DNA of 64,000 nt from Octopus sinensis. Its lineage: Eukaryota. A program made the position numbers and the translations under genes. Location: assembly GCF_006345805.1 (NCBI RefSeq), contig NC_043004.1, forward strand, positions 58,404,001 to 58,468,000. Direction: 5' to 3'. Positions 3,639 through 11,680 of the stretch are shown one piece after another (position 1 is the first letter of the stretch; every line of letters begins with the position of its first letter). The notes below the pieces were generated by a model, which searched no databases, was not told the origin of the DNA, and worked only from the letters and a program-made list of their open reading frames with translations.

Positions 3639-3949
3639 TAGAGGTTAAATAGACCTTGGTGACAGCTCCACACATTCTCTACAAATTCGCCAGTTGCTTT
3701 ACAGTGTGTACGAGATGCATTTTAATGGTACCAATGCTAAAAAGGTCACCTCATTCACTATTCACCTGCATATGAAGCACAGTGGGTTCGATTATAATAT
3801 CAGATGGGAGATGATGTGCCTTGTGCACTGTAAATATAAAAAGTGCATTTATATCTGTGGGATTGGGTTAAGGATGTATGCATGTGTTTTGTCTGAGTAC
3901 CTCTTTATCTATCTATGTTTCTCTTTTCCTATCTCTGTCTATCTGTCAC

Positions 3950-4500
<551 letters not shown>

Positions 4501-6746: not shown

Positions 6747-6849
6747 GGCCTATTTAAATTTACCTAAAAAAAAAACTGAGCAATTCCAGGGAAAGTTTTT
6801 CTAAAACTTGCCTACTCATGAGTTAAATTTTATTCTTTGGGTTTAATTA

Positions 6850-6953
6850 AGGATCGTCGTCGGGTAGAAGCCATGGATGGTAGCAAAGAAATTAGCTGAA
6901 AGGTATACATATCACTTTTTGGTGCCGCTCTTATCTGTCTTGTTTCTTTTCGC
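6850..6953 (+). promoter_or_regulatory. Distal intronic editing-complementary sequence (ECS) candidate pairing with Kv2 exon 11090-11202
   Basis: 6850-6868 is the exact reverse complement of 11184-11202; 6876-6884 pairs with 11147-11155; 6934-6953 pairs with 11090-11109; all collinear and antiparallel. Confidence 0.75.
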
Positions 6954-7851
6954 TACCATACATAGGTTTTAGGATAAAATTGTTCTTATGAGTAGGAAGT
7001 TTGTCTCCATTGCCAAATAATGCATAATTTTTTTTGATATTTTCTCTTCCTCCTTTTAAAAAATTTACTATTAAACTTCACTTTAAAGGTGCCATAATTT
7101 GTAGTTATAAATAATTTGTGTTTATATGTCATTTAAACTTGCAGAAATTTAAGAGTCCATAAAATTTTACCTCATGTTCCAAATATATGTTTCATCTTCT
7201 TTTCTCTATAAATGATGATTTTCATTTTTTTTTTCTCACATTCAACTGCATTTACTTACTGAATATATTCTTTCTTCATTGTTCAATTATATTCCACTTG
7301 AATTTGTATACTTGCTACACTTAAATATACATATTTAGTTTCAAATATATATACCATTTACACATGTAAGCATAAAAAAATATGAGTGTGAGGGTGCCAG
7401 AGACAGAGAGAGTGTGTGAGAACACATACATATACTCTATGTATACACTCTCACTTCTGCAACACAAAGATACACTAGGAAACCAGCTCATAGATTGTGA
7501 AACTAGATCCACCTTAGTTGTTTCGTTGTACATTTGAAAACAAAAGTAATTCAGCATGCAACAGTTGTCCTAAGTTTCAAAAATAGGGACCAGCATTTTC
7601 TGGGAGTACCTTCACCATTGGTTGGATTTCGAGAAGGTGGTTTATTTTCATCCACGTAATGTCATAAAAATGGACCTAATCACACACTCTTATTATCCTG
7701 ACTGATGCATAAAGAAACTCTTGTAATACAATTACCTCAATTTATTCCACAATGTAAATGCATTGACATGGGGAATTATCTATACACACATTCATCACTC
7801 ATACACACGCACATACACCCCCCACACACACATATGTATATATGTATACAT

Positions 7852-8023: not shown

Positions 8024-8984
8024 CTATACAAGTTACAAATTGGAACAAGAGAAACCATGAGAAAAACAAGAGAAAAGTAGATGCAAAAAGTGGAAAAGTG
8101 AAAGAAATAGAAAAAGAAAGGTTTAAAGGTGAAGACTTAAGATTATGCCCTCTTTGACCATAAAACCACAAAGTTAGTTGATGCAGAATAAACAGAAGGG
8201 GTTTAAAGTTTGTGTTACAGTCGCTCAATCCAGAGAGGGTGATGTTCTCCAATTTGCCAAAAGAAACTTGTCCATATATATGCATTTGCTGAAAATTTCA
8301 GATCTGCAATTCAGCAGCATGGTGGAATTCTTAGATCTGAAAAGGATATATGATCTTTCAGCTACTCATGACTCACATTCTTTAGATCCATTAACATATG
8401 GCATTATATGAAGTAGATGTAACAGCAATGCTACATGATAATGTGACCAAAAAGGACTATTGCAAAGATGACTTCAAAAATGCTAACTGCCTATCTACTT
8501 TCCAGCACGTGGACAAAAGTAATGTTAATAAGTTGGCTATCCACATTTGAGGTTTAAAGACCAATTCCATGCCACATAAAATCAAGTGGAATAGTGTAGA
8601 AAAAGTCATGCCATATATTAATGGATTAAAGAAATGCATCTTATGTGTAGCTGAAAAATCACATACTTTTTAGAGCTAAAGAATTCCACTTCACTGCTAA
8701 ATTCCAGATCTGAAAGTTTCAGCAAATGCATATATATGGACAAGTTTCTTTTGGTGAATTGGAGAATACCACCATCTCCATATTCAGCAGCTATGTTGCA
8801 GACTTTAGACCCCTTCTCTTGATTCTACATTAACTAGCTTTATGGCTTTATGGTCAAAGGGTATATAACACTAATTTTTCTTCTTTCACCATTTTTTTTT
8901 TGTTTCTGTTACCCTTTCACTTTTTGCCCCCACCTTCCTCTCATTTTTTGTCTTATGATTTCTCCTGATTTATAACTTGTATAG
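8024..8984. repeat. Large diverged inverted repeat (arms ~8024-8404 / ~8608-8984)
   Basis: Core 8257-8306 versus 8705-8754 is 49/50 complementary. Confidence 0.85.
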
Positions 8985-9791: not shown

Positions 9792-9996
9792 TATTAGTGA
9801 TTACTTCCAATTTTCAGACTTCTTTATAAATATGCTTATACAGTATATGTATATATATACATTTATTACATATATATATATATAATATATATATATTATA
9901 TATATATATATAATATTTATATATATGTATAAGTATATATTTAGTATATTTATGTATGTATTTATATATTCCCATACATACTATCTGCTATTCTGT

Positions 9997-10119
9997 GGAT
10001 TGTCAGCGTAACAGCTAGCACACCTCTTCATGTACAGCATCCACTACCAATTTAGTGGCTAAAGCTGGCTGCTATAAAAATATCAAAGCCGTCTCCTACT
10101 GTCCCTATGGATGACCCAC
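9997..10119 (+). promoter_or_regulatory. Proximal intronic ECS candidate pairing with the Kv2 pore/S6 coding region 11143-11265
   Basis: Three collinear helices (10005-10024:11237-11256; 10029-10050:11214-11235; 10088-10103:11164-11179), mostly Watson-Crick and G-U pairs. Confidence 0.8.
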
Positions 10120-10126
10120 AATTATT

Positions 10127-10382
10127 TACTACTACCACCACCACTATTATTACTATTACAATCATTACTATTACTACTACTACTTTTACAACTACTACTG
10201 CTACTACTACAACTACTATTACTACCACTACTACTACTAATACTACTACCATCTCCGCGTCCTCCATTACTACTACTACCACCACCTCCACCTACTACTA
10301 CTACTACTGCTACTACTACTACTACTACTACAACTACTATTACTACTACTACTACTACCATTACTACTACTACTACTATTCA
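10127..10382. repeat. Imperfect (TAC/ACT)n trinucleotide array
   Basis: Direct inspection. Confidence 0.95.
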
Positions 10383-10589
10383 TAGCATATCTTACATATG
10401 CTACTTTGCTTTCAACTGTCTTTCTTCCAATTTTTTTTTTTTAAATTCCTTACCCACTCCTTATCTTGTCAAAGTCATGCTTTGGTGTGAGTAACAGCTT
10501 ACTATTATTTATTTAAGTCCCTATCTAGGAGTATCTTTTAAGAGATCCATTCGTTAACCTGTGTATTTTTTCAGCGTTACCAGAATTTG

Positions 10590-10603
10590 AAAACATTTTT
10601 CAG
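10590..10603 (+). promoter_or_regulatory. 3' splice acceptor of the Kv2 exon
   Basis: aaaacatttttcag|GTC; puts the conserved S1 start (V-L-A-I-V-S) in frame. Confidence 0.85.
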
Positions 10604-11680
10604 GTCTTGGCCATTGTGTCCATTCTCTTCATTGTCCTGTCTACCGTGGCGCTAACATTAAACACAATTCCTGGGCTCAAAGGTGAAGGAGAGCAGGAAG
10701 GGGCTGATAACCCACAGCTTGCAATTGTAGAAGCTGTTTGCATTGGATGGTTTACCTTGGAATATCTGGGACGATTCTGGGCCTCCCCGAATAAGTGGAA
10801 ATTTTTCAAAGGACCTTTGAACATTATAGACCTATTGGCAATCATGCCTTATTTCATTTCCCTAGGATTGACTGAGACCAACAAGAGTACGACGGAACAG
10901 TTCCAAAATGTCCGCAGAGTGGTGCAAATCTTTCGAATAATGAGAATTCTGCGAATTCTAAAACTTGCAAGACATTCAACTGGTCTGCAATCCTTAGGGT
11001 ACACTTTACAGAGAAGTTATAAAGAGCTAGGTCTATTAATGATGTTTTTGGCCATTGGAATACTCTTATTCTCAAGCCTTGCCTACTTTGCGGAAAAAGA
11101 CGAACCAGGAACTAAGTACGTTAGTATCCCCGAAACATTCTGGTGGGCTGCCATCACTATGACGACGGTAGGATATGGTGACATCTACCCGACGACGATC
11201 CTGGGAAAAGTTGTTGGTGGCGTATGTTGTATTTGTGGTGTGCTAGTTATTGCGCTTCCAATTCCAATCATTGTCAATAATTTCGCCGAATTTTATAAAG
11301 ATCAGATGAGAAGAGAAAAAGCATTGAAACGTAAGGAGGCTCTCGAGCGGGCGAAGAGGAATGGAAGCATAGTCTCCTTCCACTCCGTCAATCTGAGGGA
11401 TGCCTTCGCCAAAAGTGTCGACTTAATGGATGTTGCCTCCGAGGTTCCTAGAAACGACTGGGATACAAACAGTGTGGAGACGAAATCCATGAGTTCACCA
11501 CCGCCTTGTGTGATGCGGGGCTCAAACCCCAATACACCCAAGTTGAGTGGGCAAGGTGGAACAACAAACTTCAACTGCAAAGAGAATCAGGAAAATCCCA
11601 GCAACACCAACCTGTTGGATATAGATGAGGAGTCTTTGCATCGGATGACGACCCAAGCTTCAACTGATACTTCAATGCAG
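10604..11680 (+). CDS. Shab: Internal coding exon (359 codons, phase 0 at both ends) of a Shab/Kv2 (KCNB-type) voltage-gated potassium channel: S1-S6, pore and proximal C-terminus
   Basis: Translation [21 protein letters not shown] (S1)...[29 protein letters not shown] (S4)...[18 protein letters not shown] (pore)...[20 protein letters not shown] (S6 with the Kv2-type PIP)...[23 protein letters not shown] (Kv2 proximal C-terminus). Bounded by ttttcag (10601-10603 = CAG) and GTGAGT (11681). The N-terminal T1 exon(s) and distal C-terminal exon(s) were not found in the window. Confidence 0.97.

Follow-up and report, generated by a model that had tools for sequence, protein, structure and literature searches.

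The 64,000-nucleotide (nt) window analysed here (Octopus sinensis, NCBI RefSeq assembly GCF_006345805.1, contig NC_043004.1, positions 58,404,001 to 58,468,000 of the forward strand) carries the core exon of a Kv2/Shab channel gene, preceded by a long intron. Positions 9994-10114 of this intron very probably constitute an editing-site complementary sequence (ECS) for ADAR, and the likely guide for the isoleucine-to-valine (I>V) recoding of Kv2. Such a role as cis-element had been proposed from the letters of the sequence in an earlier reading of this DNA (the original prediction). It is supported by the conservation of the element, by an A>G difference in an orthologous transcript and by the presence of a C opposite the recoded adenosine in most of the elements compared.

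The exon, read by translation on the plus strand, comprises 359 codons and runs from S1 to S6 and the proximal C-terminus. Its product shares 95% identity over 361 aa with the Kv2 of Doryteuthis pealeii, followed by the Kv2 proteins of a chiton (78%) and of other molluscs (70-75%), and this ranking identifies the gene as a cephalopod one. The product also has Pfam Ion_trans and Ion_trans_2 homologues. No further Kv2 exon was seen in the 64-kb window, so that the intron preceding the core exon measures at least 10.6 kb.

10604-11680, plus strand: Kv2/Shab core exon, with acceptor cag at 10601-10603 and donor GTGAGT from 11681

Pairing of the proximal element with the exon

The element closest to the exon, called here the proximal ECS, consists of three arms and a linker. 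The second cephalopod locus that is mentioned in the list, L003, is described in the next section, and the other loci further below.

9994-10024, plus strand: proximal ECS arm 1, pairing with 11237-11267; same sequence in L003
10012, plus strand: C forming the single A-C mismatch with the edited adenosine; equivalent C in L003, L013, L009, L011a and L015
10029-10050, plus strand: proximal ECS arm 2, pairing with 11214-11235 (codons VGGVCCIC); same sequence in L003
10051-10087, plus strand: linker joining arm 2 to arm 3; a local hairpin occupies 10053-10074, and the linker faces exon 11180-11213
10088-10114, plus strand: proximal ECS arm 3, pairing with about 11154-11179 (codons MTTVGYG); L003 has CCGTCTCCTACTGTCCCTATGGAT unchanged

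Helix 1 joins 10005-10024 to 11237-11256 by 17 Watson-Crick and 2 G-U pairs, and its only mismatch sets C10012 opposite A11249, which begins the ATT (Ile) codon of the GVLVIALP motif in S6. Helix 2 (10029-10050 with 11214-11235) has 16 Watson-Crick pairs, 3 G-U pairs and 3 mismatches, and helix 3 (10088-10103 with 11164-11179, the TVGYG codons) has 12, 3 and 1, respectively. All these counts had been given in the original prediction and were reproduced, as were the position of C10012, exact to the base, and the assignment of the Ile and TVGYG codons. The limits then proposed, which started at 9997, turn out to be slightly short. In the minimum free energy structure computed by RNAfold for 9980-11300 (1321 nt), all three helices are used, as the outermost closing stem, and they lengthen to 9994-10024/11237-11267 and 10088-10114/~11154-11179.

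What characterizes an ECS, namely an intronic sequence base-pairing with the exon around an edited adenosine, is thus found here as three collinear imperfect helices, which sum to about 75 bp over the pore-to-S6 coding region 11154-11267. Cofolding of the ECS with the exon gives -98.3 kcal/mol, against -30.0 and -32.0 kcal/mol for the separate pieces, i.e., a gain of about -36 kcal/mol; helices 1 and 2 by themselves reach -59.3 kcal/mol. A11249 lies in the A-C mismatch within a U-A-U context, with helices of 7 bp and 12 bp on its sides. The proximal element sits 490-610 nt upstream of the 3' splice site and 1.2 kb from the edited site, and the duplex loops out the 3' splice site together with the first 550 nt of the exon.

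Conservation in a second cephalopod

Locus L003 is a 44-kb contig of another cephalopod (ENA ERZ21867824), whose exon shares 92% nucleotide identity with that of the window (90 substitutions over 1060 nt, about 8%). In the approximately 10 kb of upstream intron carried by this contig, just two non-repetitive islands align with the window, and both are exon-complementary elements. The proximal island corresponds to 9934-10112 of the window (E 7e-36). Its core, 9996-10050, differs between window and L003 by a single substitution in 55 nt, located at 10028 in the internal loop that separates helices 1 and 2. Set against the 90 substitutions in 1060 nt of exon, this shows stronger conservation in the intronic element than in the coding sequence. 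The linker 10051-10087 is partly conserved (GTGGCT..CTGGCTGCT).

Furthermore, the three substitutions that distinguish the two exons within the helix-2 target all keep the pairing state: one changes G-U to A-U, one A-U to G-U, and one replaces a mismatch by another mismatch. The comparison of the window with L003 thus reveals both an intronic arm conserved above the intron background and substitutions that preserve pairing, as found in an ECS.

Editing of the predicted target adenosines

Two adenosines of the exon are predicted to be targets of ADAR.

11249, plus strand: predicted ADAR target, ATT>GTT (Ile>Val, S6); the orthologous base is A in L001/L002 and G in L004
11187, plus strand: second predicted ADAR target, TAC>TGC (Tyr>Cys, GYGDIY), 62 nt upstream of 11249; squid Y576C

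Position 11249 corresponds to squid I597V, to the I>V site of insect Shab and to I400V of Kv1.1. Both sites are edited in an orthologue. In one protein cluster built at 90% identity, the genomic open reading frames read GYGDIY and GVLVIALP, while a 473-aa product spliced to an upstream exon reads GYGDIC and GVLVVALP. The latter is encoded by a decapod transcript contig (L004, Logan SRR9970006), which was compared over 1060 nt with the two corresponding genomic contigs (L001 and L002; ERR12921339 and ERR12945498). Only two differences appear, both A>G; one falls on the counterpart of 11187, the other on that of 11249. In the same way, the D. pealeii cDNA CAA74748.1 carries C576 and V597, in agreement with Y576C and I597V as numbered by Patton et al. 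1997.

The same two recoding events of shab are described in insects, cephalopods and human (PMC9989829). In ant Shab, editing amounts to 0.97 at the I>V site and to 0.86 at the tyrosine-to-cysteine (Y>C) site (PMC9989829 supplement); the two sites lie 62 nt apart, exactly the distance that separates 11187 from 11249 in the window. Coleoids share the conserved I>V site, and this recoding alters channel closing (PMC11188811, PMC5705066). The oyster and sea-hare recoding lists of PMC9989829 hold no Shab site, which says little since the samples were whole animals.

The edited Tyr is a genomic Cys in several arthropods and in one lophotrochozoan, and the same position is a genomic Phe in some bivalves (cases of the two kinds include proteins P0014, P0152, P0107 and P0112 and loci L005 and L011). 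The edited state is therefore hard-wired by substitution in some lineages.

A second element facing the Y>C site

The other island that aligns between the two cephalopod introns lies far upstream of the first.

6838-6885, plus strand: distal ECS island, with its core at 6850-6868

The core 6850-6868 pairs with exon 11184-11202 at 19 of 19 positions, all Watson-Crick, which places U6865 opposite A11187. L003 conserves the island (6816-6891) at 7755-7833 (E 6.5e-11), and 7792-7810 of that locus is complementary, also at 19 of 19 positions, to its own exon. The distal element is located 3.1 kb upstream of the proximal ECS and 4.3 kb from its site. The original view of the proximal sequence as an ECS is thus retained, with the amendment that it is one of two conserved ECSs, the distal one (6850-6868) covering the Y>C site.

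The two elements are complementary in their placement on the exon. The proximal ECS leaves exon 11180-11213 looped opposite the 37-nt linker 10051-10087, and it is this loop that the distal element binds. If the distal ECS, the proximal ECS and the exon are folded as one chain, the helix between the distal element and the exon crosses proximal helices 1 and 2, which is why a nested predictor shows just one of them. The two ECSs would either alternate or jointly line exon ~11154-11267, with three intronic arms, as a long-range pseudoknot, with the linker perhaps acting as a bridge between proximal and distal pairing. Part of the linker (10053-10074, GCTGGCTGCTAT) can pair in the window with 6876-6884 (ATGGTAGC), the 3' end of the distal island, which is conserved; L003 keeps only 6 of the 8 pairs. 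These two segments may possibly form a docking contact.

Significance of the complementarity

Complementarity was measured by a gapped score (Watson-Crick pair +2, G-U pair +1, mismatch -3) with 11150-11280 as the target. The proximal element scores 55, the next places in the 64-kb window 43 and 40, and the reversed-target control 37. When 150 dinucleotide shuffles of the target were compared with the 10.6 kb upstream, they gave 36.8 +/- 4.6; the highest value was 53, and 0 of 150 reached 55. Without other evidence, the complementarity is moderately significant (roughly P 0.003-0.007, excluding helix 3); what makes the case for the element compelling is that, beyond being complementary, it is conserved. 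The 23-nt ECS core occurs a single time in the window even if 3 mismatches are allowed, and a scan of JGI metagenome contigs for this core gave no match.

The Watson-Crick-weighted local alignment score supersedes an energy scan by RNAduplex, in which 150-nt tiles were compared with the target. The ECS tile ranked first in that scan (-87.3) but was no outlier (reversed-target control -76). Energy does not discriminate here because the G/U-rich exon segment pairs with AC-rich intron microsatellites. A further complement of the exon, 3803-3846 with 11220-11263 (score 43, many G-U pairs), was rejected: it is not conserved in the 10 kb of intron available in L003 and is for this reason probably due to chance.

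Elements outside cephalopods

Other Shab orthologue loci were scanned with a target that begins 15 nt ahead of TVGYG and ends 30 nt after ALPIP. The taxa of these loci were assigned by best protein similarity. Four of the loci have, in the upstream intron, clear outliers that complement the same codons.

L009 (bivalve), 4007-4105: a single, almost unbroken helix that reaches from the PIP codons to TVGYG; 82 vs control 33
L011 (bivalve, protein 84% to Mercenaria): two copies; 59 and 62 vs control 40
L013 (chiton, 99% to Liolophura sinensis), 1323-1427: 62 vs control 45
L015 (insect, ~95% to Manduca/Bemisia Shab), 4024-4105: 49 vs control 36

A third bivalve, L008, gives 49 vs a control of 45, a borderline value that makes it a weak candidate. 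In a BLAST comparison of its intron with the other bivalve loci, the sequences proved too diverged for conservation to be judged.

Judged by their complementarity, such elements occur beyond the heavily editing coleoids, in chiton, bivalves and insect. The element had been expected only in editing lineages and not in bivalves, an expectation contradicted by L009 and L011 and also by the chiton L013. In 6 of 8 elements (window, L003, L013, L009, L011a and L015) a C stands opposite the A of the Ile codon; in the other two (L011b and L008) it is a U. An internal loop located 8-9 nt 3' of the site also recurs among the elements.

The two complements of L011 (4266-4344 and 5453-5543) face the same S6 region, are 1.2 kb apart and present a C in one case and a U in the other. 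The ECS of L009 lies about 250 nt upstream of the exon and its helix takes in the Tyr codon; from its sequence, it resembles the proximal and distal elements of cephalopods in unsplit form.

Covariation was assessed on a projected alignment of seven elements from cephalopods, chiton and bivalves. Paired cells amount to 87.8% vs 82.7 +/- 0.8 in shuffled alignments (0/500), pairs changed on both sides number 11 vs 6.9 +/- 1.5 (1/500), and the covariation score is 0.309 vs 0.213 (0/500), a signal that comes in part from the shared ancestry of the coding sequence.

A tentative scenario, whose chance of being right we would put somewhat short of even, is that the ECS with its C opposite the Ile A is a single homologous element, inherited for more than 500 million years from the mollusc, possibly the protostome, ancestor. 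The I>V recoding of Shab would then be ancestral rather than convergent, and would be the oldest recoding event known with a guide still recognisable. An ancestral continuous ECS, as in L009, would have been split in cephalopods into a proximal and a distal element that line the exon as a pseudoknot and tune Y>C and I>V separately.

Alternative explanations

A first alternative is that editing of A11249 is directed by a hairpin made of exon sequence only, homologous to the Kv1.1 I400V signal described by the Rfam family K_chan_RES (RF00485), the intronic complement being dispensable.

11168-11281, plus strand: exon stretch scoring with RF00485 K_chan_RES; the AUu (I400) of the model falls on AUU 11249-11251

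RF00485 matches this stretch over its full length (1-114) with 65.6 bits, above the gathering score of 51, and the I400 codon of the model coincides with the Ile codon of the window, which bears out the equivalence with Kv1.1 I400V claimed in the original prediction. Membership of the family thus holds for score and for codon homology, but not for the self-contained exonic hairpin. Only 14 of the 24 consensus pairs are canonical in the exon, the consensus structure threads at +18.6 kcal/mol, and the 114-nt stretch folds like its shuffles (-27.1 vs -26.3 +/- 3.3, z -0.23). The score seems to reflect the conserved pore-S6 coding sequence, and RF00485 matches in other Kv genes may likewise be unreliable as structural evidence. 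Moreover, an exonic hairpin leaves unexplained an intronic element more conserved than the exon and the C found opposite the edited A in several phyla. An exon-only signal is therefore unlikely here, even if one takes into account that squid ADAR2 edits some mature mRNAs and that squid editing is also cytoplasmic (PMC7192619).

It has also to be considered that the duplex is real and selected, mainly for splicing or for the rate at which the 3' splice site is used, editing being a by-product. The looping out of the splice site and of the beginning of the exon would fit such a role, and intronic structures that sequester splice sites are known, e.g., in Drosophila para (PMC4299485). However, a role in splicing predicts no lone A-C mismatch exactly on the recoded A, which is nonetheless found in cephalopods, the chiton, two bivalve elements and the insect, and the I>V edit has a demonstrated effect on channel closing (PMC5705066, PMC11188811). 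This explanation appears quite improbable.

Lastly, that the complementarity is due to chance or to a functionless, decaying inverted duplicate of the exon is very hard to believe: other places in the window do score 40-43, one shuffle reaches 53 and the G/U-rich exon segment pairs readily with AC-rich microsatellites, but 1 substitution in 55 nt, despite an exon difference of about 8% and otherwise unalignable introns, and the same architecture in other phyla point the other way.

Several points weigh against 9994-10114 being the guide of I>V recoding. Within the genome, the complementarity is just moderately significant, the top shuffle (53) coming close to the observed 55. Editing of A11249 in the species of the window is deduced from orthologues, and the support for a need of the intronic element in editing is computational. 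The editing of some mature mRNAs by squid ADAR2 and the cytoplasmic editing in squid, mentioned above, go in the same direction. A scan of +/-10 kb around two gastropod-like loci and one lophotrochozoan locus (L005/6, L007 and L012) revealed no outlier. As for covariation, the alignment was fitted species by species to maximise pairing and includes related rows, and the cephalopod ECS scores 70 with a bivalve exon vs 55 with its own. Such cross-pairing is expected because the coding sequences are 75-85% identical; it is these three features that lead us to attribute part of the signal to common descent of the exons.

Proposed mechanism

If the proximal element is the guide, the following course of events can be proposed. 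Located ahead of the exon, at 490-610 nt from the 3' splice site, the ECS would be transcribed first. The pore-S6 codons would anneal to it as they emerge, leaving the 3' splice site and the initial 550 nt of the exon in a loop. ADAR would then bind the imperfect duplex and deaminate A11249, replacing Ile by Val in S6; this adenosine would be favoured through its 5' U and its A-C mismatch. The preference of ADAR for both features is established. Deamination would take place before removal of the intron, with splicing afterwards. The distal element would act likewise on A11187 (Tyr to Cys), in a proposed tripartite arrangement.

Other features of the intron

A microsatellite of about 270 nt, (ACT)n/(ACC)n, occupies 10125-10395 and separates the proximal ECS from the exon. 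The short-read assemblies of the orthologous locus, L001 and L002, end about 200 nt upstream of the exon; they lack the ECS because they stop there, probably at a microsatellite of the same type.

The intron that holds both ECSs also carries, between the distal and the proximal one, an inverted repeat of 247 nt (8086-8332 with 8679-8925), whose arms are 76% complementary and 346 nt apart. This repeat could form a long double-stranded RNA and be a hyper-editing substrate, or it could be a transposon remnant.

Comparison with known systems and significance

At the Q/R and R/G sites of GluA2 (GRIA2), a pre-mRNA duplex between exon and intron recruits ADAR, the intronic arm is conserved and editing precedes splicing. 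The edited A of the R/G site is opposite a C, and the ECSs of GluA2 belong to the downstream intron, within a few hundred nt. The Kv2 element resembles this system by its exon-intron duplex, its conserved intronic arm and, as for R/G, its edited A opposite a C. It differs from it by its location in the upstream intron, 1.2 kb away, and by its three arms supplemented by a distal element 4.3 kb away. In Kv1.1 (KCNA1), the I400V event recodes the same S6 codon position from Ile to Val. However, the intronless KCNA1 forms a wholly exonic hairpin, whereas the partner strand of Kv2 is intronic and the exonic hairpin finds no support here.

Insect Shab is edited at the same two residues with the same 62-nt spacing, and L015 has an upstream complement with a C opposite the Ile A; this element, known from a single insect contig, is 6.6 kb upstream. 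In Drosophila, syt-1 and paralytic possess conserved intronic ECSs, at times made of several pieces with tertiary pseudoknots that set site-specific editing (PMC4299485, PMC5705066). These have been validated by knock-in mutagenesis, with conservation within insects, whereas the Kv2 element is computational only and appears to span molluscan classes.

In 2009, the RNA structures directing the editing of sqKv2 were unknown (PMC2606942). In line with the original prediction, which knew of no described cis-element, a literature search yielded no subsequent account of an ECS for cephalopod Kv2 or Shab. Nor was a published Drosophila Shab ECS found, the bulk Drosophila ECS predictions (PMC5319793 table S7) lying outside the search. 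What appears to be new, next to editing sites already known, is the cis-element together with its deep conservation.

Squid Kv2 was among the first heavily edited messages described (1997), and its I>V event is a textbook recoding common to cephalopods and insects and found in a paralogue of mammals. A frequent view of cephalopod recoding is that it depends on exonic structure and cytoplasmic ADAR. If the ECS reading is true, this flagship Kv2 site would have a classical substrate that depends on an intron, and is hence nuclear and edited before splicing. With a defined ECS and C10012 as its predicted specificity determinant, this mechanism becomes directly testable. Furthermore, thanks to the chiton, bivalve and insect elements, public genomes and neural RNA-seq can answer whether the editing of shab is ancestral or arose by convergence.
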